Origin: Vicugna vicugna
Lineage: Eukaryota
Assembly: GCA_013265495.1 (NCBI GenBank)
Contig: MU058565.1
Span: forward strand, 1 to 64,000
Direction: 5' to 3'
DNA length: 64,000 nucleotides
Within the stretch, counting starts at the first letter, position 1. Every line of letters begins with the position of its first letter. Positions 1-42,492 of the stretch are shown in pieces. A program made the position numbers and the translations under genes. The notes under the pieces were generated by a model. The model searched no databases. It was not told the origin of the DNA and worked only from the letters and a program-made list of their open reading frames with translations.

Positions 1-1037
1 AATTTCAGTGACAGAAAGTTACTTGTGAAGCCATAAAGAAATCAGGGCAGCAGAATTTCACCTCTTTCCTGAGAAAATGCCCCCTTAAAGAGCAGGAGTC
101 AGACTCGTATCACCTGAGTCCTCAGTCAACAAAAATACCCAGCTGCACATCTGGGCGGGTACGACGTTCTCCTAAGAGAAGCCCAGCCGTCAGGCCCGAC
201 GGCTTTTTGGCCCTCTCTCTGATCTGGGGCTTCTCTGGCCTTTGAAACAGCTTCTTAACCAAAGAGGTACCTGCTCTCTCTCCTGTTACACCTGTGCGCA
301 GGAGGTAGTCTGTGGCTTCAATCTTTTTTTCTCTCCCGTCCAGCTTTAATTCTTAACGAATGGTCACGTAAATGAATCCCCTACATTTGCAGAGTTCATC
401 GGCAGCTTTTGTAGAAGCTTGTTCAAGTGCCTCACCCTTCCAGAACTCTACATAATTTCCAGTGCCTTCCAGCACCCAGCCCTGCCCCTAATATCCTTGT
501 TCTGGCCTCAAGTCCTCATGAGGCAAGGTTGGCTTAACGGCTTGCAGCCTCAGTGCCCAGACAAGACTCCGGCCCACTCCAGACTAGGAGACGGCTGCAC
601 ATAGCCTACACTCCTCCAGGGGCCTCATGTGTGCAGCGGAAAATCTGTAAGACAGGAGGCCTGGATCTGAAGTGATTCTTTGCCAATCTAATATTTGGTG
701 AAATATGAGTAAAATAATTTTTAGACAGTGATTTTTATCCGTTGACGATTTATCGAAGGTAAATGGCATAAAGTCTTAACCCAACAGTATTTTTGCAGTG
801 ACATACTAACTGGCATGCCTATTATTAAATTTAAACACTGCTCTCTGACTCCTGTTCTTATCTTCTTCCCCAGACTCCACTGTATTTATTTACCCCAAAT
901 TGTTAGGACCCTCCTGCTCTAAAATCCACAGTTCTCTACTTACCCTGAACAATGCAGAGAAGTACATAAATCATACGTATACAGCTCAATAAATTACCCA
1001 AACGTGAACAGCCTCATATCACACCACCAGATTTTAC

Positions 1038-1165
1038 CGTTCGTTCATCTTTGAGGCGACTTTCTTTAATCCTTTTTAAAGACGTGATGAAAAAATTCAC
1101 GGCACTTTTCGGAAACAAAGACAAATTTAAAACCTCAAGGATTGGGCAAAGGAATGGAAAGAGCA
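1038..1165 (-). CDS. CYP3A: CYP3A gene A exon 8: [42 protein letters not shown]; gene continues left of the window
   Basis: 128 nt, AG/GT flanks; window bases 1-30 align to the intron just before gene B exon 9 (about 34460). Confidence 0.96.
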
Positions 1166-1489
1166 CTGTAGGAGAAAAGATAAAAGGAAAGTACAGTGAA
1201 AATGCACAATTTCCCTGCAACAATTATAATTTGTGCTACCAGTCAGAGTGAAGACACCAGGATTCTCTAAGGGAGTCATTCCCTCTGGGACCCGTGCTTA
1301 CACTCCAAGCCAAGGCCTGAGCAAGGGCAGTCCACACACAGGAGCCATGACTAGAGCAGTGAAATCAGGGGCCCTTTCTCCATCTTTTGAGTGATCAGAG
1401 GGATAGAATTACACCTTGGGCTTCATTGCCTTTTATCTATAAAACTACAGTCTCTTTGGATGGAATAGACCATAGTCTGTTACTTCAGT

Positions 1490-4130
1490 TAATCATGTTC
1501 TTCAAAAAATGACTGGATAGATTTAATACAGTGTATGTCTTTCAAGCACAATGGCATGAAATTATAAATAGAAAAAAATTGAAAACTCACAAGTACATGG
1601 AAGTGAAATGATACACTCCTAAATGACTAATGGCTTGTAGAGGAAATCGAAAGGACAATGTGGAGCCACTGTGAAGTGAACAAAACTGAAGCCACAACAT
1701 ATCAGAACTGATGGGATGCAGCAAAAGAAGTGCTCGGAGAGAAATTTATGGCTTTACCTATCTACATTTTAAAAGAACAAAAATTTTGTATCAATAACCT
1801 AACTTTCCACTGTAACATATGGAAAAAGAGGAGCAAAGAAAAACTAAAGGAAGCAGGAGAAAAGAAAATAATAAAGATTGAAGTAGAAACGAATAAACTA
1901 GAGAAGAAAAACGCAATAGAGAAAGTCAATGAAACAAAAAGTTGATTCTTTGAAAAGACCTTTTTAGGTAGATTGACCAAGAGAAAAAGACAGAAGACTG
2001 AAACTGCTAGTGATGAAAATAAAGAAGGGAGATTACTACTTACAGTAAACAAATGAGAAGGACTAGATAGGAATACCAAAACAAACTGTAGGCCAATAAA
2101 TGAGTTAGCTTAGATAAAATGGACAGATTCCTAGAAAGACACAAACTACAGAAACAGATGCCAGAAAATAGACAATCTGAATAAACCTATAAGACGTACA
2201 AAGTTTGAGCTAGTAATCAAGAATCAAGTAATCAAACCATAATTTGACAAAGAAAAGCTCAGGTCCAGAAAGTTTCAATGCGGAATACTACCAAATATTC
2301 AAAGAAGAGTTAACAACAATTTTACATAAGGTCTTCTAAAAAGTAGAAGAGGATGGAACACTTCCAAACTCATTGTACATGGCCAGTATCAATCTGATAC
2401 AAAAACCAGACAAAGAGAGCACAGAAAAAGAAAACTATAGGCCAACATATCTTATGAACGTGGATGTGTACATTCTCAACAAATGAATCCAGCAAAATAT
2501 AAAAAGAGGTCTACACCAAGACCAGGGAGGGTTTATCCAAGGAATGCAAGGCTGTGTAATACGTAGCAGCAGCAGAATAAAGAACAAAAGCGTATGATCA
2601 TCTAAAGATGCAGCAGGAGCATCTGACAATATCCGACACACTCTTGTGCTAATAACTCTCAACCAAAAGGAGCAGAAGGGAATTTTCTCAACATGACGGA
2701 GGCCACGTATGAAAAATTCGTATGTAACATCACACTGAATCATCAAAGACTGGATGATTTCCTCTAATCTTGAAAAAGAAAAAGGAAATAAGTTGTAGGA
2801 TTCACATTTCCTGACTTCAAAACTTACACCACAAAGGTGTAATAATCAAGGCAATGTGCTATTGCCATAAGGATGGACATATACATCAATGCAATAGAAT
2901 TGAGAGTCCAGAAATAAATCCGCATGTGTATACTATAAACTGAATGTTAAAAAGTCTTCCAAGACCATTTAAAGGAGACAACATAGTCTTCAATAAGAGG
3001 TGCTGGGACAACACACAGCTGATGCAAAGCAATGAAGTTGGACTCTTACCTCACACCATATACATACGAGCCAATAATGCGTAATATTAGAAGAAAACCA
3101 AGGGGAAAATCATCATGACCTGAGATTTGGCAGTGAATTCTTAGATATGACACCAGAAGCACAGAAAATGAAAGGAAAAAATATAAGACTTATAGGTTAT
3201 TACAGTTTAAAATTTTGTACTTCAAAGCACACAATCAAGAAAGTAGAAAGACATACACAGAAGGGGAAAATATTTCAAATCATGCGTCTCGATAGGAGAC
3301 TTTATGCAGAATATAGAAGGAACTCTTACAACTCAACAACAAAAGGACAAACAATCCAATTATAAATGGGCAATGGATGTGACTAGACATCTATCCAAGA
3401 AGATACTAAAATGGCCGACAAACATACAAAAAGTTGCTCAACATCACGAGCCTTTAGGGAAATGCAAATCAAAACCACAAGGAGATTCCACTTCACACCC
3501 AGTGGAGTGGCCATAATAAAAAAGAAGGAGAAGTGCTGACCAGGCATTTGCAAGAATGTAGAGAACGTAGACCCCTCACACACCACCGGGGACAATGTAC
3601 TACGCTGCAGCTATAGTGGGAAATGGCTTGTCAGTTCCTCACAAATTAAACAAAGAGTTACATACAGCTCAGCAGGTTCACTTCTGAGTACTAACCCAAA
3701 GAATCAAAAACAGGGATTTCAACAATAACTTGTACGTGAATGTGCACAGCAGCACTATTCACAACAGTTAAGAGGTGGAATCAACCCAAATGTCCATCCA
3801 CTGATGAATGGATGAACAAAGTGCAGGGAGGTCATAAAACGGAATATTAATTGACCACACGAAGAAATGATCCATGCTACAATGCGGGTACACCTAGAGA
3901 ACATCACGACAACGGATCGAATCCAGCCACAAAAGACCACGTATATCATTCCACCTGTCATCTACTTGCAGTGTCCCGAACAGGCAAATCTGTGCTTAGA
4001 AAGTAGGATAGTGGTCGCTCAGGGGCAAGGGGCATGCGAGGTGACAAGTAAAAGGTACAGGGTTTCTGAGTGGACAAAAATGTTCTACAGTTGACTGCGG
4101 TAATGGTTGCACATATCTTTGAATGTAATA
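1490..4130 (+). mobile_element. Degenerate LINE-1 ORF2/3' region in gene A intron 7
   Basis: A-rich plus strand, L1 ORF2-like peptide remnants with many stops. Confidence 0.9.
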
Positions 4131-4139
4131 AAAGCCATT

Positions 4140-4900
4140 TTTTCAGTTTTTTGAGCCATAACTGACACTCTGTACTGTGTTAGTTTAAGGTGTACAGCAT
4201 AATGACAATGCATATATTGTGAAATGATTAAGATCATAAGTTTAGTTAATCTGGTGGTGGCTCACAGCAAAAGAGAATGAGACAATGAATATATGTATGT
4301 TCATGTATAACCGAAAAACTGCGCTCTACACTGGAAGTTGATAAAACATTGTAAAATGACTATAACTCAATAAAAAATGTTAAATAAGCTAAAAAAATAA
4401 GTTTAGTTAACATTCATTATCTCACATAGTCATAAAAAATGTTCTTTTTCCCTTGTGTTGAGAACTTTTAGGCTCTATGCTCTTAGCAACATAACACAAC
4501 ACAGAGCAGGGTTAGCCATATTGTATGTTATACCATCAACAATTATTTATGTTACAACTGAAAGTTTGTACCTTTTGGCCACTGTTATTCAATTCTCCCA
4601 CTACCCAACCCCCACTTCTGATAACCAAAAATTTGAAATAGTTTTTGTATGAGGTTGGATTTCTTTTTTTTGATTCTACATTTAAGTATTTATCTTCCTC
4701 TATCTCACCTATTTCACGTATCATAATGCCTTCAAGGGCTATCCACATCATGCAAAATCTGGATTTCCTTCCTTTTTATGGCTGAATAGGATTCCATGGT
4801 GCAAAGGCAATATATACATACATACACACTGACATATCACATTTTCTTGATCCATTCATATGTCGGCGACACAGATTGTAAATATTATTGAATTTTACAT
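4140..4900 (-). mobile_element. L1 3' end (minus) with a younger plus-strand L1 tail nested at ~4250-4400
   Basis: L1 3'UTR motifs (tttttatggctgaatag, ttccatgg); nested tail ends in ataactcaataaaaaa. Confidence 0.75.
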
Positions 4901-5061
4901 TTTTAAGGGGTGAATTACATGTTATGTGAATTCTATCTCAATATAGCTCTTTAGAAAAGAAAGAAACATAAATAAAGGAAGGGTGGAGGAAGGAATGAAA
5001 GAAGGAATAAAGGGAGAAGGGGAGGGAGGGAGTAAAGAAAAACACAGAACAGTCCACATAC

Positions 5062-5210
5062 TTGATACGATAAGGAGTGGATCTAGGAAGTCAAATCTTA
5101 GGAGCTTCCTGCCATTTTTTACAAAGGGATCCTGTGGGTTGTTGAGGGAATCAACGTTCACTCCAAATGATGTGCTGGTAATCACATCCATGCTGTAGGG
5201 TCCAAAGATG
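5062..5210 (-). CDS. CYP3A: CYP3A gene A exon 7: [49 protein letters not shown]
   Basis: 149 nt, AG/GTATGT flanks. Confidence 0.97.
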
Positions 5211-6433
5211 CTGAGTGCAGAAAGAAAGACATGGATGGCTCAAATTAGCACGACTTTCCCATCCTTTTCCAACATATGCAACAAGAAATGCATGAAAAAT
5301 AAGATGCCCAGGCAAGGAGGTAAAGAACCACACTTTGAGAACCACCAGCTGGATCCTCTGAACAGTCTATGCCACTGTACCACTGGGTCATGAGGTGTAT
5401 ATGAGTTGCCAAAGACACAGCTGGCCCTGTGCTAGGGACGACTGGGACTCAGTCAAGTTAGACCCTCGGCTCAAGGAACTCGGTCATAGAGGGATGGACG
5501 CCCACAATCACACAAATTGCAGTAGCGTGTTTTGACTACGGGCAAAAGCAGGTGTATAAGCACTGCGTCTGAGCAGGACAAAGGATGGAATCACTAACTT
5601 CCTCAGGGAGCCAAGAAAAGGGACATTGATCAGGGACTCGCCTCAACCCAGATCTGTGCTCAGAGTGATCCCTGTTAAGCACGTCACAGAACAGCAGCAC
5701 CCTGCTCTGAGTTGCCAGAAACATCACCCCGCCTTGGCGTGTACCCCACTAAGGCTGCAGAGACCCGCTCTTCCTCAGTGCCGCTGATCTGCGGTTGCCC
5801 CGAGGGCAGAGTCATTTCTGTAAAATGTAAGGAGTAAAAATGTTTCTAGTTAAAAAATTAATAAATCACTCCAAAATTGACTTGAGAGATGTAGCAGCTA
5901 AGTGACCACATGTCCCCAGGTTTTCAGGGCAGGCCCAGTTTGCCTGCTGTTCCTGCCTCACGGACAAAACCCCAGTCTAGACGCTCAATCCCGCGGTCGC
6001 CCTGCCCATAACCTGCGCGGGGCCTCCTCTCCTTTGGGACTGAAGGAAGTAGCAGTTGTGGCGAGAGGTAATAGTTAGCAAGTTCAGGTGTTCTCAGCAA
6101 CATTGTGAAGAGATGTAAGTTGTGCCAAGTTCCGGAGCGTGATGATTGCACCCCAGCCACGGCCCCCCAGTGCGTACCAAGGCCCTTCCCCTGCCATCAT
6201 CCCCCAGCGTCCGCACTCAAAATCGACATCATCGTGTTTCTTCTTTCTCTCCTGGCTGCCCTGCTCTTTTCGGGGATCCACCTCCTTCTGGGATGGCCCC
6301 TTGGCGTTAAACCACTGCAACCTGCTTCTGTCTGGTCAGTACGGTAACTCAGCAGTGGGAACGTCGGCGCCGTGGCAGGCAGCTGGAAGGTCTGCCCAGA
6401 GCCCGGAACACGGGCAGCTCTGCCCCTACTTAC

Positions 6434-6522
6434 TCCTTCATGGTGACGGGCTTGCCTTTCTCTGCTTCCTTCCTCAGGTTTCTCAACAACACATCTCCGT
6501 ACTGGCCAATGATGGGGAACAT
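6434..6522 (-). CDS. CYP3A: CYP3A gene A exon 6: [30 protein letters not shown]
   Basis: 89 nt, AG/GTAAGT flanks. Confidence 0.97.
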
Positions 6523-6763
6523 CTAGACACAAAATACAACAGCACCTGAGGTTAAACACAGAGACTCAAGTCCTAGAAAGATCAGGCTTTCCCATGAATG
6601 GAGCAGTAAGTGACATTTTATAACGAATCTTATAATGTTGCTTCCAGGGGGTGACGATGAAAGACAGTTTTAGATCAGCAGATCCCTCCTTGGAAAGGGA
6701 CTGTGATCTCATTTTCTACCTTATTCTCTAAGTTTCTAATAGCAGGTCCTCTTCTTTCCTTAC

Positions 6764-6877
6764 CTCCTTGAGCTTCCCACTGGTGAAGCTTGGCGACAGC
6801 AATATTCGTATTCTCTTCCACTGTTCATCCTCTGCCAGAGTAATGGCATTTTTCATAACTCCCACTGGACCAAAAAT
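6764..6877 (-). CDS. CYP3A: CYP3A gene A exon 5: [38 protein letters not shown]
   Basis: 114 nt, AG/GT flanks, WxxxR heme-propionate motif. Confidence 0.97.
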
Positions 6878-7539
6878 CTAGAGTTGAAAAAAACACATTT
6901 TACCCTGTATAAGTTTTGGAGATCTCCACATTTGTGGAAATTGTGTTAAATGTGCAGCAGTTATTCAGTAAGTATTTCGTGACTGCGTGCTTCGAAGCTG
7001 ACCCTAAGGTAGATGGTCAGTAAATATTTATCCCAAATGCACAGCCTCCTTTGAGGAGACACCCAGCCACCTGATGTCCTTTCCAGACTTTCTAGTCCAA
7101 TCTCCTTTTACATGCAGAAGACCCACGGGCAGGGAAACTGGTCTTCCAGGGGAATAAATGGGGTAGGTCTGAGCTCATCCTCCTGGGCTGTGCAAAGTAC
7201 AAGGAAGGGGACTGGTGACAGGAGCCAGAGAGCCTTGGCAAAATGCATGCTGACCAAACAGGTTCTGCCTTTACATACATCTAAAGCCTGAGCCGCCGGG
7301 ACAGGGGAGGTCTTGCTATGGTGATTGTTTAAAATAATAGTGCTTAGCACTTGAAACATTAGGGAACTATTTGCTAGTCTGAATAAATAATGATGTTACA
7401 TGAAAAACAATTTCCGCTACATTTTTTGCCGAGAGTAAGAAGGAAAACCAATTTTTATTTCTGAGCTTGGGACTGGCCTATCAAACCAAACTGCTTGAAA
7501 ATCTCCACAGCCTTCAAAATTACATTTTGTTTTAAAATG

Positions 7540-8780
7540 GATATCCCCAACACCCATTTCTGATAAAAACTCACAAAGAAGTAACAGAGGGAAACTGCTT
7601 TAATTTGATAAAGGACACTTAGCAAAAAACCCCGAAAAAACAAAAAACAACTACGGCAAACATGACACTTAATGATGAAATCCTGGGTTAACCTCATCGA
7701 GATGGCAGAGAAGGAGATTCCAGCCTCTGTTGCCCAACAAAGAAAAACAGTAAGACAGCTAGCAACGTAGAAAAATAGATCTAGGAAACCTTAGGAGTCA
7801 CTTAAGAAGTTTCAGCAACTCAGTAGAGCCTAAACGTGTGAAAAACTGACAAAAAAGACATGGGGGAGGGTTCCACTCTGCCCGCATCAGCTCACCCCCA
7901 AGGCCAGCGCCGCTCAGCGCCGCGCGGGGCTCCCAGCCTGAGAGGGCGCTCCTCGCTGGGAGGAGGACAGCAGAGCGAGTGAGCACCTTCCCAGCCGCTG
8001 AGAACACTGCAAAAGTGATGTGCTTTGGTCTCACGCCACCCAGAGACTGGCAGAGCTGAGACATCTAGGAACAAGCAGGCACTAAGAAGAAGGGCAGGGA
8101 CTACCAGTGTTAACTACACGGCAGGAGCGGCTGTGGGGAGGGACAGTCTTCCCACAAATGGGGGAGGAACAGCTTAGACAGTTACACGCAAAAACCAAGA
8201 AACACAAAAGAACCATGACCTAAACCTCCATGTTACACAAACAAAACAAAACAAAAAACCCCCACAAAATAGATTGCAGGCTTAAAAGTAAAACATAAAA
8301 CTATATGTTCGGGGGGGGAAAAAGGAGAAAAACTTCAGGATCTAGAGCTTGGTGAAGGTTTGGGAATTCATACCAAAGGCACAACCCATAAAAGAAAACA
8401 ATGGTAGGTTTGCCTCATCAAAATAAAACAAAGTCTGCTCTGCTAAAAACCCGGGTAAGAGGAGAAGGGCAGGTACACACTGTGACCATAAACAACGGAG
8501 GGAGCCTTGCGGGGCTGGAACAATTCTGTGTTTGGATTGTGGTGGCACTTACACAGAGCTAAATCCATGGCAAATTTTCAGAGAGCGCACAGAGCGCACA
8601 GAAAACTGATTAAATTGGAATCGGCTCTGCGGATAGTGTCACAGTCTGCGTCCTGCTCTGCTGTGGTACGACATTCATTCACGATGTTACCACCGGGGGA
8701 AGCATGATGCAGGTATATAACACGGGACCGCCCTGTAATTTTTTCTTTTGAGAACATTCTTTTGAGAATTTACAATTATT
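7540..8780 (+). mobile_element. Old L1 fragments (ORF2 piece, 5'UTR-like piece, 3' piece) in gene A intron 4; homolog in gene B at 40850-42170
   Basis: L1-like sequence shared by both paralogs. Confidence 0.7.
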
Positions 8781-8838
8781 TCAAAATGAAAATTTAATAA
8801 CGAATGAATGAATTAAAATTTTAAAAACACATGCCTAC

Positions 8839-8938
8839 CCGTCGGTTTGTGAAGGTAGAATAGCATTCTTTCACTAACACTGTTTTGATCATGTCTGGAT
8901 CAAGAATTGCCAGCACAGGCCGTCCACCATCATAAAAC
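8839..8938 (-). CDS. CYP3A: CYP3A gene A exon 4: [33 protein letters not shown]
   Basis: 100 nt, AG/GT flanks. Confidence 0.97.
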
Positions 8939-10189
8939 CTGCGTGCAGAAAACAGCTGATTAGATTGAACGAACTGGTTTGTGCAGCCGGGGCCACCCTG
9001 GAGTCCAGATGGTCATACCGCCGTTACATAACCCTTACTACTGGTATGATGGCTAGGGATACATTAACACTCCGGTTCGCTCTAGGACTGTGTGCAGGGG
9101 GATTCTACCACTCTTCATAATTTTTAAGGTTTTCAAATATTTCATTTTCAAAAACTAAGCTGGCTTAGTAAATCATTGAAGGCAAGTTAATTATGTGGAA
9201 ACAAACAAACAAACAAAATTAAGGAGAATCCACCTACTCAGTCATTTTTGAAAACATTTCAAGAAACATGAAAAATGTATATGATATAAAGTCAGGTCAA
9301 AATTCAAGACACACTGATCACAGAGAGGTAGCAGTGTGTCTGCAGACGGAAGATGTCGAATGGTCTACAGTGGCAGTAGGATTGTCAAAGATTTCTTTGC
9401 CCTATTTTATATTTTTTTGAAATATTAAAAAAAATAATACGGAGATATCCTTGGTAGCATCAAGTTTAGAATAATTTGAAACAAAAGGACAAAGAGAATA
9501 AAGGAAGTCAGAGCAGCAGGTAGAATTCATTTCTGAAATGTTCTCTTTCCACTGCTTGCATGTCTTCTTCTGCCGGGGTCCCCTGTGGGCCTCGGGCCCC
9601 ACGGCAGTGACATTCCTGTAGCAGGGCAGACGCACTTTTGACACACCTGCCACCCAAAGCTGAGCCTTCATATGTGACACTCCCCACTCTGGCCTCATCT
9701 CTTGCCTGTGAGGATGTCCATTCCCAGGAACGGGCCACTGCTGGGACATTTACCGTAAGTTGAATCATACTGCCTGCTGGCACGTTGTCTTCCACTGTGA
9801 AGCAGTTGCAATTGCTAGAACACAATGGAAGATTTTCTGCAAGTCACCTGTTACTCCTTTGACTTCACAGAGGAATTTCAAATGGTTTTGTGATCATGTA
9901 TATAAATGGATGAGAATCAGTGCGCTATTTCTAAAAACTATTCTAAAGCTCAGAGGCTTTAAGTGGGCGTCAACTGTACTTAGCGCTGAAGCCAGGCCAG
10001 AAGTGACTGAGGAGGCAGCTCGGCTGCTCCTCCACCTCACTGACCATGTTTCTTGGATGAGTCCCTTCTTCCCACCATGTTTTCTCAAAAACACCTCAGT
10101 GGAGACGGAATAGTGGTTTGGGGTGACCCTTTATATTCATGGTATCACACCAGCCTTCGTATTTCCTTCACTACCAGTTGAAATTCAGA

Positions 10190-10330
10190 TTCCTGGGCCC
10201 CTTCCCAGATCCTCCGGAGTCAGTGATGCTGTGGTGAGGGGCAAGTCTTGACTTTTAACCTGCCCTCCCAGGGGGTTCTTATTTACACCCAAGCACAAGA
10301 ACTGTTTTCTCAAGAGAGAACTGGGATCCA
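10190..10330. mobile_element. MER5-like hAT DNA transposon remnant; homolog at 43690-43825
   Basis: cagattcctgggcccc..cagatcct..ttttaac motif. Confidence 0.6.
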
Positions 10331-11297
10331 CCGTGAAAACGCGACTCCATCCGGAGCCCACAAGCACTACATGTTGGAGCCGGTCCAGAGGCGATGCAGT
10401 GCTGCGGGCTCTTTCCACTCTATCACGTTGCCCTTGTGGGCCATGCCAGCTCAGCAGGGCCTTACGGTTTCTGAGGACTCGATGAGGGAAGATGAAGAGG
10501 TACGGAGAGGCAGAGCCTTCTCCCACATGCTTTAAGCAAACAAGCATCACATTACAGCTGTCCTGCTCCTCTCACCAAACCTCCAACAGCTGCGAGGCAA
10601 CAGCCTCTGCCAAGGCCACTCTGCAAAGTCATCGAGTCCTCCAGCACACCTGCAACACCTGGGCTAGAGATAGCCCACATCTTTTCAAAGTCAGAGGAAT
10701 AGAGTAGTTAAAGCAGTTTTTCTATACACTTCTATTGAAAAATCTTGGCTTAAAATTAAAAAAAAACCACACCTCTGTGCAGAGAAAGTTTTAAAAAGTA
10801 GGGTAAGAAGGGTGTCCTTCTCTTGTTACCTCTACCCCACAGTCCTTCTTTAATAAGGACATACTTTTAAACTCAAAACTTAAATAAAGGAATTTGGCTT
10901 TTCCTTGAAAGCGAATCATGTCGTGAAGGGTAAACACATACATTTATGAGCACATGTTAGAATGTTCTGGAATAATGCGTTTGATGCAATTAAGGGTGCC
11001 CCAAAGAAGGCAAAATGGAGAAAAGAGGAAGAGCAAGATACTGGGCATGAGGTGGTGCTCGGAGTCCCTGGGCCATCAAAGGCTGGAGGAAAGTGATGGC
11101 CTGCAGCTCTCCAGGCCTGACTCAGACTGCAGACCTGCACACCTGGTGACCTCGGGGCTCCCTGGGAGAACAAGCTCCCAAAGCTGCACAACAGATGGTT
11201 TCAGCACAAGCAGCTCCGCACTGAGACCGCCCCCTTCACCGCAGGGCAGCGCCTCATCACGGCAAGCCTATCCCATGGAAGTTGCCGCAATACTCAC

Positions 11298-11350
11298 CCC
11301 CACACTTTCCCATACTTTTTAAAACATTCCTTGTCAAAATCCCAAATACC
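11298..11350 (-). CDS. CYP3A: CYP3A gene A exon 3: GIWDFDKECFKKYGKVWG
   Basis: 53 nt, AG/GT flanks, phase consistent. Confidence 0.96.
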
Positions 11351-11966
11351 CTGCAGGAGAAAAAAAACATCAAATTATTAGTTAAATGTATTGAACCCTA
11401 CCTCTAATTGGGACAAAAGTGACTTGAATGCCATGAAATCAGGGTTAACGTTGTCCACTGGCAAATGGAAGGAAACTCTCATTCAGGGATGTCTTAGGGG
11501 AAAAGAGATAAAACAGACGAGATATTTGAAATGGAGCATTTAAAGTCATTCCTCGCCTTGTCTGAATACTTAATAAATCCTTGTCTTTCTGAAGTGTTTT
11601 GGCTTGTGCATGTGTTCTCTCTAAAATCTCATAGCCCTCTGAGTTTACTCTCCGTGGACATGTAAGAATAATGAAGCTGAGAAAAAGAGTTTCCTCTGCA
11701 CACCTTCAGCTCCTAGTTAAGCTGCCTTTTCATTTATCCTAAGAGCCCTCTCCAGAATTGTAGCAGAGTTAGGAAGTTAAAGACACCAGTGACTTCTGTT
11801 AGTCTAGCAGATTTAACATCTAAGGCATGTGTGTTGAGTGAGAAACTGAGTGAGCAAAACAAATGAATGAGAAAGTGGATCGACTTCTAGTTTTCCAGCT
11901 CAGACAGAGAAGAAGGGGAGACACCACAGCTCAGCGAGGGCCAGTGCATAAGAACACGTGCCCTGA

Positions 11967-12204
11967 CTCCAAGATTTGCAGATACTGACTAGTATATATA
12001 AAATAGATCAACATCAAGTTTATACTGTAGAGCACAGGGAACTATATTCAATATCTTATAGTAACTTATGGTGAAAAAGAATATGAAAATGAATATATTT
12101 ATGTTCATGAATGACTGAAGCATTGTGCTGCACACCAGAAATTGACACAACATTGCAAACTGACTATACTTCAGTAAAAAAATATATATACATACAAGAA
12201 AAAA
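11967..12204 (+). mobile_element. 5'-truncated L1 3' tail, specific to gene A intron 2
   Basis: Flanked by ~14 bp TSD AACAC(G/T)TGCCCTGA; absent at the gene B homolog (~45350). Confidence 0.85.
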
Positions 12205-13473
12205 ACACTTGCCCTGAGTATTCACTTCTGTAACTGTAAAAACAAAACAAACAAACAAAACCCTTCCGGTTGCTAAGTTTCTGCTATGACTTTTGATGGT
12301 TTAACTGCAAATGAAGGTCCCAGAAGTGTGGGTCTTGGAGTGCATCCACCAAGTACTTTATCTGGGGAAGGCGGAAAGGATATCGTTGCCTTTTCAGAAG
12401 GAAGAAAGTTCAAGCAGTTCTTAGGCAGTAATGAGACAATGAAGGCTCAGGATGGAGAATGAGGATCTGAGGAACAAGCCCCAGGTCTGCGGGAAAGGAA
12501 GTCTGAGGCCGAGAGCAGCCTGCACACGAGGCTCTGCCCCTGGACGTCCAGGTGCTGCTCATGAGCTTCAGCTCAGGGGCCAGGCCCCGGGCGAGGAGGC
12601 GTCAGACCCGGATTAGCATCAAGGCTCTGCTGGAAGTCACAGTCTGTGTCACCTAGTACATTCTGTTCAGTTAAATTAAATTGAGAATAATTTTCTTAAA
12701 TCATGTCCCTTCTAGTGATTTTGTATAAGTGGTTCTGCCTTGCTTAAAAAAAAAAGACCAAAAAAACCCCAAATGCTCACGCAGAGGTTAAATAGGTGAA
12801 GTCGAAGACAGCTACCACCCTATCTCAGTTATACTCACTCTTTGCTCAGATTCCCCCGTAAGGCGCTTCCTTTCAGGGCACAGGAGTAAAGCAGAAAGCT
12901 CTCGCTCCAGCTCTCAGATCCCCCGGATTGTCACGGGCACAAGAGGTGGATTAGGGCGTGGAGAGACCGGCAGGGCTCAGCGGTTCTTGAGGGAATTCAG
13001 GTGTGTGAAAATTACCTGGTTGTGAAGTTTTGGGCTGCCTTAGAAAGTGAAGTTTCCCAGCCATCCAGGAGGAATGGAAAAAAAAGGTTACCCACAGCTC
13101 ATGCTACTAACAGCGAAGTCTGAGTCCAGTGAACATAGTTTAAGGAGCCAAGACTGGGCACCTCCTTCATGCTTTTCTCCTAATACTAAGGGAGCGGTAC
13201 CTTCCGGGGGATCTGCGTCTGGCAGAAAGAAAACCAGCTTCCCAGTACTCCCAAGATGGAGCATCAGGTCCTGTGCTGGACCAGCCAGGGGGTGGGCTGT
13301 CTGCCCGAGGCAAAACCTGGGGCTCCTACAGCTGACAATGAGGCACGTGCTGCTTAGGCCCACGATGGCATCTCTAGGAAGTGTGAAACCTCAGGACTTC
13401 CTCCTTTTATGATGGCACTCAGCTGGGATTTGCAACCATGAGAGGCAAAAGAGGAGGTTCAAACAACACTCAC

Positions 13474-13567
13474 CTTTTGGTAAGCTAGAATATTTCCAAA
13501 AAAGGGCAGAGGCTTTGGCCCAGGAATCCCCAGCTTCTTAAATACTCCATGTGAGTACGTCCCATAG
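13474..13567 (-). CDS. CYP3A: CYP3A gene A exon 2: [31 protein letters not shown]
   Basis: 94 nt, AG/GT flanks, proline-rich PGPKPLP hinge. Confidence 0.97.
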
Positions 13568-14084
13568 CTGTAAAGTGAAAGAGAGAACCCGGTCACAGGG
13601 ACTGTGGGACAGGTGGGGGGCTGGCCAGTCACTGACTCAGAGCTGGGTCACTGACCTAGGAAGTAACATGTAGGTGATAAATAAAAGCAGCGACTCCAAA
13701 AGCAATCATCACATTCACTGATTGTCTCCTTTCCCACCTCCACAGTGAGACCCGCAAAAGCTACTGATGAGTAGCTAAAAGCAGCTGAAGTCTTCAGGGT
13801 CCCCATCCCAGAGTGAATATTTGCTAAATATCTTGAATTTGAGTGCTCCTGGGAGGTTCAGGCTGAAATCCTTTGCGAGAATTACTCATGTTTATTAGTA
13901 ACTTGACGCAGTCATGATTTCCAGATTCTTCTTCTAGGTAGAGTGGGGGAAATTTTTTGTAGCACCCAAATCTCTAGCAATTTCCCGTCTGTTAACTGAT
14001 CTTCAAAACACATAGGGAAGGGGAGAAATGATTAGTTCCCCAAGTTCGAGTTTACAAAGGTTATGAACCTGGACAGTTACTCAC

Positions 14085-14155
14085 AGATAGAGCAGCACCA
14101 GGCTGGTAGCCAGGAGAACCCACGTTTCTATGGAAAAGCTTGGGATCAGGTCCAT
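14085..14155 (-). CDS. CYP3A: CYP3A gene A exon 1 (coding): MDLIPSFSIETWVLLATSLVLLYL
   Basis: ATG at 14155, 71 coding nt, GTGAGT donor; typical CYP3A N-terminal membrane anchor. Confidence 0.97.
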
Positions 14156-14272: not shown

Positions 14273-14278
14273 TTTATG
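14273..14278 (-). promoter_or_regulatory. TATA-like box of gene A (CATAAA)
   Basis: Positional homolog, ~120 nt upstream of the ATG. Confidence 0.5.
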
Positions 14279-14379: not shown

Positions 14380-14397
14380 TGGCCTCCTTTGTGTTCG
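14380..14397 (-). promoter_or_regulatory. Degenerate proximal ER6 of gene A: CGAACA-caaagg-AGGCCA
   Basis: Positional homolog of the gene B ER6 with 3 half-site substitutions. Confidence 0.7.
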
Positions 14398-19440: not shown

Positions 19441-20779
19441 TCCAGGCTCAGCCCTGCCCAAGCATTTAGTGGGAAAGCCCGGGTCTTTTGAGGTGGCAGT
19501 GACCAGGGCTTCGCCCCCACCCAGAGACAAGGTGAGGCGCGTCCGCACACCCCTCGGGGGGGGGCTGGGGTGAGGTCGGGGGTGTCCCTTCTGGCCCCGC
19601 ACAGCCCATCGCGCACAAAGCCCCCTGTGCCCTGAGGCGGAAGCGCTTCCTTAGACTTCACAGCAAAGGGAGGAGGAGGCGGGCGCCCTCAGGGACGCTC
19701 ACTTTCTGCTCCATTGCAGAGTGTGTCCCTCCTGATGACCTAGTCACGGACCTCTCCACCACATGGTAGGCTTTATAAAGTGCTTTTAATGGATTCTTAC
19801 AAAATCTCTGTGAGATAAAACGTGTTGGAATCATTTTATTCCCACTTTACAGGTGTCGAAACAGAAGCTCAGGGTAAGGAAGAGTCCTGCCCAAGCAAAT
19901 AAACTGTGAATCTGGATCACACAGCCAGATCTTGTGATTCTAAATTGTTTCTGTGTCATGTTTGTTTAGAGTCAAGGGGCCTCCTGAAACAACTCTGCAG
20001 GCTGCGCCAGCCTCACATGGGACAGATATGTCTTTGCACGTAGCTGGGAATGACCCAAAATGAGATGCACATCCTTCTGTATTAGGTACTTGCTGAACTT
20101 TCGGTGCTTCCGTTAGAGGATAATGCAGGTGATTCGGACATGTCACAGTCAGAGTCATTTGGGTTTCCAGGAAAGCGGACAGTAAAAGGTGATGAAAACA
20201 GTAAGGGCAAGAGGAATCAGAGAACAGAGGCAAATATCAGAAGACCACGTGGAAGGGAATTAATAAACAGGAAGTGTAAGATGAAGGAAGAAGAAGAGCG
20301 AGTGTGTTGGGTGTGCTGGAGAGGAGAGGCAGCTCGCCGGCCTGTCCTCATCGCTGCAGTGGCTTCCTAACAAGCGGCCTCATCCAGGCAATTCCCCTCT
20401 TAAGCCACACGACAGATGCGGGTAAAATGTGGATCCTTTAACGTTCCCCTGTTGCTCAAATGCCTACAACCATTCCCATCATCCCCAAGAGAAAATCTAA
20501 ACGCCTCAGGTTAGCAACTCATGACCCGTCCTCACCTGGCCAAGAGGGGCTCCTTCAGATGTGTTCTGACCCATTTCCTCATCCATTTGGCACAAAGGAG
20601 GGAAGGGGAGAGGGCATTTCAGGCTGTGAGAATTGTGCAGCTGACTGCCATGATCACTGCTGAGTGTATTTCTCATCTCTTGCCTGCAAAACACAGTGTC
20701 TAAATGAAGCCAACTTTCTTACTGCTAATACAGGAGGGAGTGGATCAGAGAGCAAGCTAGGGACACTCTGCTTCTAGGG

Positions 20780-23325: not shown

Positions 23326-24049
23326 GGCTGAGCCAGAGCTAGTTTGTGCACAGTGGCATTCAGCCGAGTAGCATACAGGTCCTGAAATTCAGCCCAAACT
23401 CTGTGATCTAAGCTATGCAAAGTGTAGCGGAGCTTGTCCTCAATTGCCAAAAGCCACTGATTAGTGTAGACTCAGCCCTGGAAGGTGCTGGGATTTGAAA
23501 CCCAGGACTCCAGCTTCAGAGCCCCTCACCTCTCAGTCACAGTGTGATGTCACCTCCTTATATCAAAATAAAGAAGACTAGGGTAGGATGCGGAGAGCTG
23601 TATAAGCCAAAAGGTACCTTTGTGACCCCACCAAATAATCACAAATTTACTGAAGAGCCTGTTCAAAGAACTATTTTCCTGACCCATCTCAGAGAAAATT
23701 GCCAACCTGATATTTCACACCCCGTCTCACCCACAAACGGTGATGTGCCAGCACATGACCACAGCACGACCTCCAAGTCAGGAAGTTCACGCTGTACGTG
23801 ACTGCCATCTGACCTCAGAGCCCCCAGCTCCTCACCTGTCCCCACCATGTCCTTATCGCAGAAGGACCTGGCCTGTGAGTCACCTTTAGATGTCCCCTCT
23901 CCAGCGTCTCCTTCATCTGGAACATTGTCAGCCCGGCTTTGCCTTCATGAGCTTCATGCTTTCATAGATGACAAACTAGTAACAGACCAGGAGTAGAATA
24001 TTCCTCAGTTTGGGTTTGTCCGTCTTCTTTTCAGGATTTCTTTCAGGTT

Positions 24050-26095: not shown

Positions 26096-26191
26096 TCAGG
26101 CTCCATTTACAGTCCCATCTCTGGGCTCCACCTTTAGAACAACAGGTTTTTCCGGTTGTGAAAGCGACTGAGTGATTAATTTCAGGGGGAT
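26096..26191 (-). CDS. CYP3A: CYP3A gene B exon 13 (coding): [31 protein letters not shown]
   Basis: 96 nt to TGA; total CDS 1512 nt = 503 aa + stop. Confidence 0.97.
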
Positions 26192-28261
26192 CTGCAACAG
26201 TTAAACAAGCTCATGAGAACTGAATGATGAAGCACTGCCGCCGAGGAAAGCAAAGCAGACAAGACACATTACAGAAAATAGCTTTACAAACACATAAAAG
26301 CTATTTTTAGCATCGTGTGTATCTGATTTTTTAAAAACTACCAATTCAATATGTTTAATGATATAGGAATGATCAGGCTGTCTATATTTCCTAATTGAAT
26401 TTCAACCGTTTGCCTCTTTCAGAGAATTGGTCTATTTAACATATGTTATAAAACACATGGGAATAAAGTTGTTCATAGTATTCCCTTATTATGCCCTATT
26501 TAAGTTTTTTTTAATCCATTTTTAATTGAGCTATAATTGACTTATAGCAGTGCAAAAATTTAGGGTGTAGAGCATAATGATTTGACTTCTACATATCGTG
26601 AAATTATTAACAAGGTACACTTTGTTAACATTCATCATCTCGTGTAGATATAAAAAGAAATATTGTTTTCTCTGTGTGAGAACTCTGAGGAGCTACTCTC
26701 TTATACCAAACAGAAATGTTAACTGTTGTCATCACGTTTGCATTACAGCCCTAGGACTTACTTTAACTGGACGTTTGTACCTTTCGATCACATTCATTTT
26801 TTGATCCTTTATACTTATTCTATAAGCTGTGTTAAGACTGGATAGTGAGAACATTCATCCATCATTTATTCCAAAAACTGTCTATTGGACACTTACTCTA
26901 TACCAGGTTTGATACAGAATCAGGTTGGCCTGTGTTCTTTATTGATTTAAATTTTAAGTAAAAATACTGAGTTTTAAAAACGTACCAGATTCTTAGACAT
27001 TATGGCAAAATATCTTGAAAAAGGATATAGAGGTAATCTTTTGTGTGCTGGAATTCAAAAGGTAATCCTGTGCAGGTATGACGCAGGTTAACTGTATGGG
27101 CCATTCTCAGCTTCCAAAGAGCTCAGTTACTTCTCCCAGTAGAACCCATCCAGTTTCAGGATGGAGAGGTGTTTGTGAGGCATCATGCCTGTTTCTAAAT
27201 ATCTCCTGGCTCCCAAGTATAGTACAAATGGTGAACTTCTGAAGACTTGCAGTGCTTTTATTTTTTCTGATACTTTTAGCTCCATTCTCACCCAGTCACT
27301 CCATCAGTGTTGGTGGAGCTTCCTTCCAATGTCAGTTGACAGAAGGGAAAGCAAACTGTCACGGAGGGGAGAAGCCCAGCCTGTGGATGACTGGGTGGAG
27401 CTTACAGGGAGTGTCTGCCCCCTCCCGGATGTGCCGGAGACCCCCTTTCTCTCGGGGCCAAGTCCCCTGTCTGTCCACCGTTACAGGACTGCCATAAGGA
27501 TGCCCACAAGTAAAATGAGAACCATCTCCATCCCCTGCCTCCCTGAGAAAGGCTACTTAAGGGGGGGGGCTGCTTATTAAATGTATGAGTCCTAGAAATA
27601 AGCCTTATTATAGGGTCGAGCTTGCTGTGAATCAGTGGCAACTATTCCTTGTGCTCTCCGGGAAAGATTCCAGATCTTTCTGTAAATATAACATCTTGTA
27701 TTTTAAAATTTCAAATGGCATGCATATATTTCCCCTGCAGACAAACAGACACACACAGAACAAGCACGTACATAGATGTCATTTGTTAAATCTTTTAAGT
27801 TCCAACAGTTTAACGTTTGTATCCAAGACCTGTAAATTAACTGCTCATCACTCCTTAAGCCTTTACCAGATGACTGGGAGGCACCATTAGGCATTTATGA
27901 AAGGAACACAATGAGGGGCTAGAGTTAAAGACGTTCTTAGGTGCAAAGGAAACACAGAAACCAAACTGGATGGTTCAATGATGAAGTATTAAGGTAGATG
28001 GTTGGACCCATGACGTCAGCCTGTGTAAACCAGTAACAGAATAGAGCAGGAAATGGGCTCAGGACTGTTTGGAGGAGGCTCTGTGGAGAGGCTTAGGGGT
28101 TGAACTAGAACTTGAAGGGGGAGGACAGAATGGTGGGGGGAGCGGGAAGGACACACATGGAGTTATTATTGGAATGCAAAGGGAGCCCAGCCCAATGGCA
28201 GCAGGACTCCCGGAAGGTGAGGGGGACCGTGGGAGTCTTCACATCTGGCAGAAATGCTTTC

Positions 28262-28410
28262 AATCAGGGATTCTCGCCTTGGCTGCACTGAGACGTTTTG
28301 AATGCCGCACTCTGGGGGAATTACATTAGAACGTCCGAGATGACCTAGGCACTAGGGTTTTTAACTCCCCCATGATTTCATTCTGCAAGCAGTGGCTGAG
28401 GACCGCTGCC
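28262..28410. mobile_element. MER5-like remnant; homolog at 62690-62840
   Basis: cagggattctc...gcagtggctgag..ctg termini. Confidence 0.5.
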
Positions 28411-28786
28411 AGGAGAGCTTCTGGAAGTCCTGGTGGAAAATCATGTTGTTGAAAAGGCACGACATGGTCATCACTGCACTCACGACTGTGCACACACTTC
28501 CCCTTCCTTCCTGCAGACTTGAAACCAAGTTTAAAATGTTGCTGAATTTCAGTGGACTGCGTATAATCAGGCCATGCCAACTGCACTGACTCTAGATGAA
28601 CATTATAGTTGAGTCTCTATGAAGCCACAGACTTAGCCCTCCCGAGCTGATGGCAAATAGATTCTCAGCCGAAGAGAATACATTTTTCTTTGAATAGATC
28701 ACATTCTTAGGCATAGAGACTGAACCCTCAGTTAAGAAAACAACCCGCAATGAAACATTGTGAATGCAGAAAGTGAACTGTCTGAC

Positions 28787-28949
28787 CTGTGTTTCTTTAC
28801 AAGGTTTGAAGGAGAAGTTCTGCAGGACTTTGACGAGAGCCAGTTTCATGCTCATCATAGCGAACCTCATGCCGATGCAGTTTCGGGGTCCAGTCCCAAA
28901 AGGCAGGTATGTGTAAGGATTTATGCTGTCCTGGTTCTTCTTGCTGAAC
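28787..28949 (-). CDS. CYP3A: CYP3A gene B exon 12 (heme ligand): [54 protein letters not shown]
   Basis: 163 nt, [10 protein letters not shown] heme-binding cysteine motif. Confidence 0.98.
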
Positions 28950-31124
28950 CTGGATCCACAACAGTAGATGAAACAGGTTAATGAGACATAAGAACCACAA
29001 GAGCTCCAGGTGTGGTTTTAACTTAAACCCTCAACCAGTAGCATTAGGGATCCTTTTGTGGGAGAGTCATTCATCCTGCTGTGGTTACTTTGCTGTGAGA
29101 AAGGTCAGCTCCAGTTCCTTCCCATCCCCCCCACCCTGTAAGAGCTCCCAGTCTTGCTGAGGAGATGAGATCAATGCTGTTTAACGAAAATTAATATTTA
29201 AACACTTAAACTACAGTCATGGAGGTGAGATGTTCACGCTCTGAAAGTCAAGCCGGAAATGAGACTGACTAACGGAAACGTGGGTTCCTGTCTCCATGGA
29301 CACTTGTGTTGGTCACATGCTCCTCGAGGAAGGAAGGAGCAGAAGTGTCTCTGAGTATTTAAATTACTATTTTTCCCTGTTTTCCCTTCCCTTCCCCTTC
29401 CCTTCTCTTGTGTCACTGTGTGTCTTTCTCTGCTGTACACAAAATGCTTAGGTCAAAAGATTCACAGAATCATATGATTCCACTCTACTCCCAATCACTA
29501 ATTTCCCTGTCTGCCTGTTCCACTAGCCTATGAATTCCTTGGTCATTAGACCTAGGTTTTATTCAAATCTGACTTCTCAGTATTTGAATATATTAAGAAA
29601 AAAATGTGGATTTGGAGAAAGTGATAAAGTTGTGGTGGTTAATGTATATTTTAAAGAATCCCTATCTTGCAAAACATTCTGTCATATTTACAGGCCATGT
29701 GACTCACAACGGTACAGGGATTAGGAGGGTAGGAGTGGCATGTGATGGAGCAGTGACGTGGGTTGATGGTTGTTGAGCAGGGAATGGGCACAGACAGATA
29801 CATTACAAGTATTCCATAGACTTGTACCTATAGAATATACTTGTGAATGTGTCCATTACACATACACTTGTGTATATTTAAAAAATTCTCCATAATAGGC
29901 TTTTTCTAACATGTGGATTTCACCGCTCCTGGCTCAGTCCCTGACACACAGAGGTAAGCACTCCCTGCGTGATGACTGAATGAACCCAAGAGAAGTGGAG
30001 TGACTGCTCTCTGTCTGGGGTTAGGACTGTGGAGCTGCGGGTCGGGGGGGAACTGCTGAGCTGGGAGGAACCACAGGTTCCCTGGTCCAGAAAACAGAGG
30101 ACTTGGTCCACTCTAACTTCTTTCAGCAAGTGTTATGTGTGGCCATGATGCTAGCACTAGGGACACTGTGGCAATAAGACCAAGTCCCTGCCATCAGGGG
30201 GCTTAAAGGCAGGGGTAATAAAAGTCTAGATCCCAGCTGGGGCCGGAAAAAGTTCATTCCACATTTTAACTCATTATGTAATAAATGGGACCATCAACTC
30301 TTTCCAGAGTTCAAGCTGTGCCCAAACCAGCCCTCTGTTCCTGGTTCCTGAAGAGGATGCTCAAGCCCCTCCAAGGAGGATGTCCCAGACGTCTAGAGGT
30401 CAGAGGGCTTCTCTTTGGAAGGTCACCAAATACCGAGGCAGAAGGGAGGTGGCCCAGGACTGCAGACACAGACAGCACTGGGGGCCGTGCTCCCCTCGGC
30501 CCTCAGTGAGGCTGCTCCAACCACCAGGGGTGACATCACCCCCGGCCTCTCAGCCTGAACTCTCACAGTAATGGTAGAAGACGTGACAGTCAATGTTTAA
30601 AAACATGGAAATGTGGGAACGTTGGTGGTGAATTCAAAGAGCTGAAGAGAACAGACAGAAAGACTTCAAGGAAATAAAAAGCCTATACACCTAAAATAAG
30701 ATAGAGGTTAGGTCAATTACAGCATATATACAAATACATACAAACACAACACAGAATGTTGTTTATAGTTTGCTGTGAAATAAGGCAAGCAGTTCAAAAA
30801 CAAAAAAAGTATAATACCATTCTAAAGGTTTTAAATCTATATATGCATTGGGAAAACGTCCACATGGACATACGCCACAGTATTAACGAGGCCCGTCTGA
30901 AGGCACTAGGAGTACAGCCAGCTGCTACTATCTATTTACTAATATACAGTTTGTATAATTTTAACTCAAACAATAAACACTCTTGCAAAGAGAAAAATCT
31001 CCTAACAATAGAAAGACGTACAAATAAATGACTGCACAACCACACATTTGTCGCCTATGAGGGTTCTCAGAATTTGCAAGCACCCAAAAGGATCAGGGTG
31101 GGTCCTTTCTCCAGGGCCTCGTAC

Positions 31125-31351
31125 CTTTCGGGACGGAACTCCTCAGGCTCTGGCCAGAGCTCTGGGTCGTGGTGAAGAATGAAGACTGGCACCATCACCG
31201 TTGTCCCTTTGGGAATGAGCACCCCGTTGAGTTCCACATCTTTCTTACAGACCCTCTCCAGCCTACCAGCAAGTGGGATTAACCTGAGCAATTCATTCAC
31301 CACCATGTCCAGATACTCCATCTGTACCAGGCCATCGTAGGTGGGGGGCGC
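31125..31351 (-). CDS. CYP3A: CYP3A gene B exon 11: [76 protein letters not shown]
   Basis: 227 nt, AG/GT flanks, ExxR and PERF-meander motifs. Confidence 0.97.
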
Positions 31352-33149
31352 CTGGGAAGGCAAAAGCAGATTTTGACACATTGAGATTTGGGATCAACCT
31401 TCAACTCAGTCTATGAAGTGCTATTGAAATGTTAGAATCTCCAGAGAATAATTTAAACTGGTAACGGACCTTAGCATTCACAGACATTTTAATCTCTTTC
31501 ATGTCTTTGACCCGCTCAGTGGCCCATAGAGATGTGTGGGGTAGTTACAACTACGGGAGGCCCTGGGGACAATTCCCTAAACAGGGCCTGAAATCCCACA
31601 CACTGTCAGGTAGTGTTTTTTCTTTCTCATGAGAACAAATGCGACTAATAGACTATGACCCCTACTCTTAAGTGAAATACCCCTTAGCCACTGTTTCTTT
31701 TTAAAAGAGAGGCCACACACCCGTTCCAAGGAAATGCTTTGCATGAACGTGCAATTTCCCCCCTTAACATACAGGTTTTAAGCTGAAAACTCCTGATTGC
31801 TGATTCTCCTGTATATGCATAGAACATTTGAAAACACTATGTGATGTAAAATCTAGGTAAACAATTTTGGGAGAAACTAGTTCTTTTTTAAAGTGAAAAT
31901 ATGCAATGGAGGGGTAAGATGGCTGCTCGGGGGGCACACACTTTCAGATCTAGGGGAAGTTACCTGAGGACCAGGACCCCGCCCTCGGCCCCGCCCTCCG
32001 TTGCTGAGCAGTCTCCTGCTGTCACTGAAATTTTGACTGTAAAGTCTGAGGGTCTAATCAAGCCTCTCCAGCCCCAGAGGCCAGGTCTCCTAACAGTTCC
32101 AGTTTTGGCAGAGATCCGCCAACAGTGAGGGTGACGTGTGGCTGTCACATGGTGTTGTATTTTAGAGGCAATATCGTAAAGGGTAAGAATTGGCTCAGGA
32201 GCCAGGGACACCCTGGCTCAGAGCTTGGCTTTTTCTCCACGGGGTACACGACGAGTGTATGCAAGGATTCCATCTCTCGGCAGCTCAGTTTTCTGATGTG
32301 TCACATGGAGATAATTCGAGCTGACACGTCACAGGGCTCTGTGGCAGAGACACTCACTGCTCACCCAGTGTCCACGTGGTCCCCACATTTCCCAGCCCAC
32401 CTGAAGTTAGGGGAAACCAGCTTTCTTTGCCAGCGGGCTGTGAACTGAGGCGATTATGTCAGTTCGAGGTAAAATACTTGAAAAGCTGGTGAGCAACGCT
32501 CAAGTCCCTTATCCCGAGACAACAAGAAGGCCTCACGGACCAGACAACACAGCTACAAGATGGTGGAGCCTCTCAGTCAGCATCCCCGAGTAACTGTGTG
32601 TCTGAGCTCCCCATTCCCATCCTCCACTAACCATCCATGTGGGACTTGAAAATGTGAGTGAGAAGTAAATATTTGCTATATAAAGCCCGGAGATTTGAGG
32701 GTTAATCTGTGTCTGAGCATAACCTAGCTTCTCCTGACTAATACTGAATTTTATGAAGGTGAGGTTCATTTATAAATAGAAAGTACTTAAGTAGACATAT
32801 ATAAAAGAAGTAAATGTTAACCAATAGTGTTGATGTTATTATAAGGATTATTTTAAACAGAGGAGAACACAATGCTAGTCTCTGTCTCTTAGCGACCTTT
32901 CCCTCCTATTGCATCCAAAGAATCACAATATGGGTTTTACCAGAGAAGGCAGATCATCTCTAATTTAGGTTGGCCCTATGCTGTATCCTCATCTTGTATA
33001 TGAAGGACCCAAGATTCTGAAAAGTCATAACTTATCCAAAACCATAGTCACGACTTGAGCTCATGTCCTCTATTTTCTACCCTCCTCTTAGTCTGCAGTT
33101 TACCCAGGGTGGGAGACTGAATAATGTTCCCAGTTCTCTGCCCCTTCCT

Positions 33150-42372: not shown

Positions 42373-42492
<120 letters not shown>

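Follow-up and report, generated by a model that had tools for sequence, protein, structure and literature searches.

Do two neighbouring CYP3A genes of Vicugna vicugna still share the nuclear-receptor elements of their promoters, or has one of them been uncoupled from PXR and CAR? An earlier note on this DNA had claimed that one gene, A, has lost the proximal ER6 that its neighbour B retains, and had predicted that B is inducible by xenobiotics and A only weakly so. We analyzed the stretch of 64,000 nucleotides that contains both genes (the window). Three genes were found by the heme motif and other CYP3A peptides and were modelled from the canonical CYP3A exon lengths and phases. All three are on the minus strand and form a head-to-tail CYP3A array with a repeat unit of about 34 kb, in the minus-strand order C (3′ end), B (complete) and A (exons 1-8), and A is colinear with B through genes and intergenic DNA.

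1..14155, minus strand: gene A, exons 1-8 only, the remainder lying beyond the window; its NCBI name in alpaca is CYP3A24-like
14155-14085, 13567-13474, 11350-11298 and 8938-8839, minus strand: exons e1-e4 of gene A
6877-6764, 6522-6434, 5210-5062 and 1165-1038, minus strand: exons e5-e8 of gene A
26096..48309, minus strand: gene B, CYP3A29-like, intact, with all 13 exons, 503 codons and AG/GT splice sites
60330..64000, minus strand: gene C, 3′ end with exons 12-13 only; orthologue of a dromedary gene annotated CYP3A29 (L006)

The eight exons of A have open frames and AG/GT splice sites and are 98.9% identical to the alpaca ‘CYP3A24-like’ (P0346) and 93.6% identical to the Bactrian camel orthologue. 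Gene B is 99% identical to a camelid ‘CYP3A29’ cluster (P0333/P0389/P0390), and A and B share 79% identity. The 13-exon structure, the open frame and the motifs FxxGxRxCxG, ExxR and AGxETT mark the genes as CYP3A, in the case of the motifs of A via its orthologues, as the 503-aa alpaca and Bactrian proteins of full length carry the haem, ExxR and I-helix motifs; relatives also carry PF00067. The gene order C-then-B was found in dromedary as well, and positions 1-24168 of the window are 98.96% identical to the alpaca assembly. In the protein tree all cetartiodactyl CYP3As form one clade, and the camelid paralogues (A; B with the C-type; the 3A12-type) stand apart from those of hippo, ruminants, pig and whale. 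Because the base of this tree is not resolved, the NCBI gene names are no proof of orthology to ruminant genes, and an assignment of A as the orthologue of ruminant or hippo CYP3A24 was rejected as unproven.

The proximal elements and the TATA-like boxes, which are invariant in all nine promoters that we aligned, are located as follows.

14380..14397, minus strand: degenerate proximal ER6 of gene A, CGAACAcaaaggAGGCCA, with three half-site changes and one spacer change from the ancestral form
48539..48556, minus strand: intact proximal ER6 of gene B, TGAACTcaagggAGGTCA
14273..14278, minus strand: TATA-like CATAAA of gene A
48420..48425, minus strand: TATA-like CATAAA of gene B

Both 18-mers read on the minus strand exactly as in the earlier note (reverse complementation gives CGAACACAAAGGAGGCCA for 14380-14397 and TGAACTCAAGGGAGGTCA for 48539-48556). 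They lie 242 nt (A) and 247 nt (B) upstream of the ATGs at 14155 and 48309, and they fall into the same columns of an alignment that joins the two promoters over about 1 kb with 83% column identity. As the CATAAA is about 110 nt downstream of each ER6, the elements are near −150 of the inferred start, a location like that in cattle (−156) and in human. The six-base spacer and the homologous position are shared by A and B, which occupy the same columns as the promoters of hippo, buffalo and Camelus, all with the ER6 position 242-253 nt upstream of the ATG.

The element of B is the sole zero-mismatch match to TGAACTn6AGGTCA in the 64-kb window and has the everted half-sites intact, whereas that of A (CGAACA/AGGCCA) deviates from the everted half-site rule by three mismatches across both half-sites. 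It is one of 70 three-mismatch matches in the window with a chance expectation of 76, and since such matches are no commoner than chance, it is recognisable by homology alone. The claim that B has kept the ER6 perfectly and A has lost it was thus confirmed, as was the claim of damage to both half-sites of A, with two changed positions in the 5′ half and one in the 3′ half. One half-site is changed at its bases 1 and 6 and the other at its base 4, with bases 2 and 5 unaltered in both. Perfect AG(G/T)TCA repeats of the DR3-5/ER6 types occur three times in the window vs 0.37 times expected in composition-matched shuffles, a count reached by 2 of 300 shuffles, and all three are located within the B unit. 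The proximal ER6 of human CYP3A4 (pNR), located at −272/−255, is TGAACTcaaaggAGGTCA (PMC4125183, Table 2). Compared with it, B has identical half-sites, as had been stated before, and A has only the spacer in common.

To place the two forms in an evolutionary order, promoters of relatives from camelids, hippo and buffalo were fetched and aligned. The 18-mers at the ER6 position are:

CGAACAcaaaggAGGCCA: window A, alpaca A and Bactrian A
TGAACTcaagggAGGTCA: window B, dromedary B, wild Bactrian B and hippo CYP3A29
TGAACAcaagggAGGTCA: buffalo ‘CYP3A28’
TGAACTcaagggAGGCCA: wild Bactrian ‘3A12’
TTAGTTcaagggAGGTCA: dromedary C-type
TGAAGTtcagggAGATCA: hippo ‘3A24’

The ER6 of B shows the ancestral state and that of A a derived one, because the B form is the same in Camelus B and in hippo CYP3A29 and because its half-sites equal those of human CYP3A4 and those in a bovine primer: the mutagenesis primer for bovine CYP3A28 implies the half-sites TGAACT and AGGTCA. 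By the same comparison the degenerate element of A is old and fixed. Its form is found in both alpaca and Bactrian camel, i.e., in Lamini and Camelini, and is therefore older than their split. By published estimates the Lamini/Camelini split is roughly 16-25 million years old, and dS between Lamini and Camelus amounts to 0.05-0.07 for A and B. A TGAACA half-site is also present in the buffalo ‘CYP3A28’. This annotated gene (L004) was considered as the counterpart of the promoter cloned from cattle and rejected, as its flanks are unlike the published primers and its 10-kb upstream region is devoid of the DR5 block. Since the buffalo promoter is a different one, the bovine comparison rests on primer sequences.

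Besides the ER6, a second element separates the two genes.

54601..54617, minus strand: perfect DR5 AGGTCAgcctaGGGTCA, 6308 nt upstream of the ATG of gene B
20362..20380, minus strand: DR5 remnant upstream of gene A, with an 18-bp deletion at the junction 20376/20375

The flanks of the B element match the mutagenesis primer as well as the forward ChIP primer for the DR5 of bovine CYP3A28, which identifies it as the homologue of the bovine F3 DR5 (−5541/−5525). In the homologous flank a DR5 is found for B and not for A: of the two half-sites upstream of A, the second is removed by the deletion and the first survives as AGGCC. Alpaca A and Bactrian A share this 18-bp deletion. Dromedary B and wild Bactrian B carry the DR5 unchanged, and its counterpart upstream of hippo CYP3A29 shows a single mismatch. 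In bovine cells ChIP signals for RXR and CAR were reported at this DR5, although the enrichment was rated as low and the outcome as suggestive in that study itself, and mutation of the DR5 had a marginal effect on PXR activation. Both elements for which the cattle data indicate a link to PXR/CAR are thus lost in A.

The two genes also differ in their evolutionary rates:

dN, Lamini vs Camelus: 0.0026 for B, 0.028 for A (exons 1-8)
dS, Lamini vs Camelus: 0.068 for B, 0.052 for A (exons 1-8)
dN/dS, Lamini vs Camelus: 0.04 for B, 0.53 for A (exons 1-8)
Amino-acid changes, window vs Camelus: 3/503 for B, 17/266 for A
Full-length amino-acid differences, alpaca vs Camelus: 6-10 for B, 23 for A
Identity of the upstream 10 kb to Camelus: 96.1-96.8% for B, 94.0% for A

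B is under strong purifying selection. The dN/dS of the A protein is about ten times that of B, and the frame of A is still intact. In the promoter of A, changes affect 4 of the 18 ER6 positions vs 48 of 286 elsewhere (Fisher p = 0.52). Because this is no faster than the surrounding promoter, the loss looks like drift and not like selection for a new role, and it represents a release from constraint rather than a targeted change. For B together with hippo, 0 of 18 ER6 positions changed vs 38 of 286 elsewhere (p = 0.14), which is compatible with constraint and not significant alone. Unique promoter changes number 52 for A vs 16 for B. A relative-rate test with hippo CYP3A29 as outgroup is descriptive only, because the promoter and protein trees disagree on whether this gene is an outgroup or the orthologue of B.

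Further candidate receptor sites were found at larger distance from the start and inside gene B:

23775..23789, minus strand: DR3-like TGAACTtccTGACTT, 9.6 kb upstream of gene A; candidate homologue of the XREM dNR1
57879..57893, minus strand: identical DR3-like TGAACTtccTGACTT, 9.6 kb upstream of gene B
28774..28788, minus strand: perfect DR3 AGGTCAgacAGTTCA across the splice donor of exon 12 of gene B; specific to the B lineage

Of the 15 positions of the DR3-like element, 12 agree with human dNR1 TGAACTtgcTGACCC; its one mismatch to the consensus is at base 2 of a half-site (AAGTCA). The element is followed by a TGAAAT-initiated stretch that resembles dNR2 and is without a good 3′ half-site. 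A distal PXR input may persist in A, provided that the −9.6 kb element is a functional homologue of the XREM. Since the block with the DR3-like element is present upstream of both genes, it does not discriminate between them. The block has a length of 1.1 kb (22973-24096 / 57078-58196) and is 89% identical between the two upstream regions, in flanks of about 69-73%; its identity between Lamini and Camelus is about 94.6% over a 315-nt segment, no higher than background. The block may be a tract of gene conversion or else an enhancer under constraint. A scan of the region upstream of A for DR3, DR4, DR5 and ER6 with one mismatch allowed gave 2 matches vs 2.1 expected, and there is thus no sign of compensating new sites of these types. 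Upstream of the ER6, the CAAAG core of a predicted HNF4 DR1 is gone in A; in cattle, mutation of the HNF4 DR1 site was without effect.

The perfect DR3 across the exon 12 donor is kept in Camelus B and degenerate in all other paralogues and species checked; its position is 14.5 kb upstream of the start of A. The promoter of gene C lies beyond the end of the window, and the C-type ER6 data come from the dromedary orthologue (L006:9763-9778). The ER6 position reads TTAGTTcaagggAGGTCA in this gene, where the everted repeat is destroyed and a perfect DR4, AGTTCAagggAGGTCA, is created, a possible switch of the element class. DR4 is a further type of site for PXR, CAR, LXR and TR.

Several observations concern exchange between the repeat units. 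On the minus strand, the core promoter and 5′ UTR of A (14156-14285) have a GC content of 65% with 9 CpG in 130 nt, vs 49% and 2 CpG for B (48310-48440), and this region of A recurs almost unchanged in the camelid paralogues of the C-type and the 3A12-type. Exon 1 of A shares 97-99% identity with these paralogues, the other exons 76-93%. This pattern points to gene conversion of a promoter/exon 1 module among the three paralogues, with a putative end short of the ER6. At the other end of the gene, window positions 60054-64000, which comprise the 3′ end of C with exons 12-13, are 97% identical to the 3′ end of alpaca A (L001:39081-43007) and 94% identical to the 3′ ends of Bactrian A and of the dromedary C-type gene. 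Hence A and C have become homogenised in their 3′ halves. In alpaca, the gene model of A (47 kb) extends into a partial duplicate of exons 8-13. The A promoter in the window is without 13 bp at 14349/14350, just downstream of a TGCCAAC (CCAAT/NF1-like) box, which are present in alpaca A and Bactrian A; the gap is either a species-specific deletion or a difference between assemblies. The region around positions 17432-17960 is colinear with the upstream region of Bactrian A at about 94% identity, so an insertion there would probably be old.

With respect to transcription, we used word-search shares in the assemblies of public runs. A stretch of A with exons 1 and 2, in which exons make up about 0.26, had shares of 0.19-0.22 in four RNA-seq assemblies. 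The stretch of B had shares of 0.15-0.35 in eight RNA-type assemblies, six of them absent from the list for A; since these shares exceed the exon fraction of the B stretch, the material must include unspliced RNA or DNA. In one study, words of A together with less than one in 20 of the words of B were found in some runs, the reverse in others, and both sets in two. A run labelled ‘liver metagenome’ contained words of B only, and these weakly. The run-specific occurrence is a weak and indirect hint at different regulation of A and B.

Taken together, B has kept the ancestral cetartiodactyl nuclear-receptor layout, with an ER6 about 150 bp upstream of the inferred start and a DR5 about 6 kb upstream. 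After the duplication both elements decayed in the A lineage, the ER6 by three half-site substitutions and the DR5 by the loss of 18 bp, and both losses were fixed before camels and llamas split. A remained a gene with an open frame, catalytic motifs and a core promoter comprising a TATA-like box and a CACCC/BTE box. The most likely mechanism would be regulatory subfunctionalisation through neutral loss: B stays the conserved gene that is inducible via PXR/CAR, and the promoter of A is largely uncoupled from ER6/DR5, with a weak response or with other inputs. The sequences themselves show the homology of the elements, the direction and age of the changes and the unequal rates, and from these we infer differences in receptor binding, inducibility and expression; on balance we lean towards A being substantially less responsive through PXR/CAR than B. 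The prediction of an inducible B and a weakly inducible A, which was made from the ER6 pair, gains strength from the loss of the DR5 and from the faster evolution of A, and with several points against it, it continues to be a prediction from sequence. A more far-reaching idea, which we put forward tentatively and consider unlikely, is that A is a camelid-specific CYP3A that escaped control by xenobiotic sensors over about 16 million years ago, having lost ER6 and DR5 and acquired a GC/CpG-rich core promoter, which conversion made common to it and two further paralogues, and that it has since evolved quickly toward a constitutive or endobiotic (e.g., steroid) role in tissues other than liver.

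The opposite view would be that A still responds to PXR/CAR and that the proximal difference is minor, either because the affinity of the variant ER6 is sufficient or because the shared −9.6 kb DR3-like element or other enhancers of the cluster contribute; enhancers in tandem arrays may act on several genes. We regard this as possible, if rather unlikely. It is in line with the conservation of bases 2 and 5 in both half-sites of A, which were the most conserved ones in the bovine study, and with the identical DR3-like element upstream of A and B and its similarity to human dNR1. Data on the weight of the proximal element point the same way. The ER6 (−156) of cattle CYP3A28 contributes to PXR-dependent activation, and no more than 30% of the ligand response was lost on its mutation; in human cells, activation was about 2-fold with just the proximal promoter and 13-fold when the XREM was included. 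Among ligands, SR12813 and RU486 activate bovine PXR, and rifampicin, one of the inducers suggested in the earlier note, does not. On the other hand, with three half-site mismatches the A element is no better than the 70 background matches, the DR5 is lost too, the DR3-like element carries the mismatch at base 2 with a putative XREM homology, and a change of two bases in the ER6 of human CYP3A7 is reported to reduce binding of PXR and VDR.

It seems quite improbable that A is simply a decaying or marginal paralogue under relaxed constraint, in which the losses of ER6 and DR5 reflect general neutral erosion without a division of labour. Such erosion would explain the elevated dN/dS of A, the lower identity of its upstream 10 kb to Camelus, the excess of unique promoter changes and the fact that the ER6 changed at the background rate of the A promoter. 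Nevertheless, three species have maintained an open frame of 503 codons, canonical splice sites and catalytic motifs over many millions of years, dN/dS does not reach 1, conservation extends to the TATA-like and CACCC boxes, and words of A occur in RNA-seq assemblies. Extremely improbable is an artefact of assembly or gene conversion in a repetitive tandem array that only simulates two different promoters. The window does contain runs of N and signs of conversion tracts, such as the exon 1 of A with its near identity to two paralogues and the 89% identical block inside flanks of about 70% identity. Both promoter types with the same 18-mers were, however, recovered independently from the alpaca, Bactrian, dromedary and wild Bactrian assemblies, and the order C-then-B is the same in dromedary. 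We therefore retain subfunctionalisation through neutral loss of ER6 and DR5 as the preferred, sequence-derived explanation.

This reading would be of practical relevance. Drug doses for camelids are extrapolated from cattle or horses, and B is a concrete candidate for the inducible enzyme behind drug-drug interactions. Gene A, in turn, represents a paired natural mutant that could be used to gauge the contributions of the proximal ER6 and the distal DR5 in an artiodactyl, and the pair would add an independent non-primate case of CYP3A paralogues that diverge in their nuclear-receptor elements. The camelid divergence seems to be undescribed, as the one survey of camel CYP genes that we found only counts copies, reports six CYP3A copies in Bactrian camels and calls for expression studies (PMC5748438).

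For primates it is already established that the paralogues of CYP3A clusters gain and lose PXR elements individually. ER6, XREM and CLEM belong to the original placental scheme, from which CYP3A5 deviates by the loss of the XREM and of a repressive YY1 site (PMC3264657). The earlier note had compared B and A with human CYP3A4 and CYP3A5. As a concept of paralogue uncoupling this comparison holds: also in the human pair one paralogue gains PXR elements and the other is partly uncoupled and constitutive in other organs. At the ER6 itself the analogy is inexact, because CYP3A5, unlike camelid A, has kept this element, which is underlined in both aligned proximal promoters, and it is PXR-inducible in liver and gut (PMC3264657). 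A closer human parallel would be CYP3A7, whose weakened ER6 TTAACTcaatggAGGTCA differs in two bases and reportedly binds PXR-RXR and VDR-RXR less well. CYP3A4 and CYP3A7 are, like the camelid genes, tandem paralogues with aligned ER6s about 250-270 nt upstream of the ATG, one consensus and one changed. In contrast to A, with three half-site changes and the loss of the DR5, CYP3A7 has two changes, only one of them in a half-site, and has kept the XREM.

The layout of B most resembles that of bovine CYP3A28 with its ER6 at −156 and its DR5 at −5541/−5525: both have the two elements, identical ER6 half-sites and homologous DR5 flanks, whereas the first DR5 half-site is AGGTCA in camelid B and AGGC.A in cattle. 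In the protein tree B is no more than a possible orthologue of CYP3A28, and the bovine effects were modest. Finally, the camelid −9.6 kb block recalls the human XREM at −7.8 kb (dNR1 DR3 plus dNR2 ER6) in that the dNR1-like TGAACTtccTGACTT is followed by the TGAAAT stretch, but the spacing of the elements, by our count, is about 57 nt compared with about 29 nt in human, and the camelid block is located upstream of both A and B.
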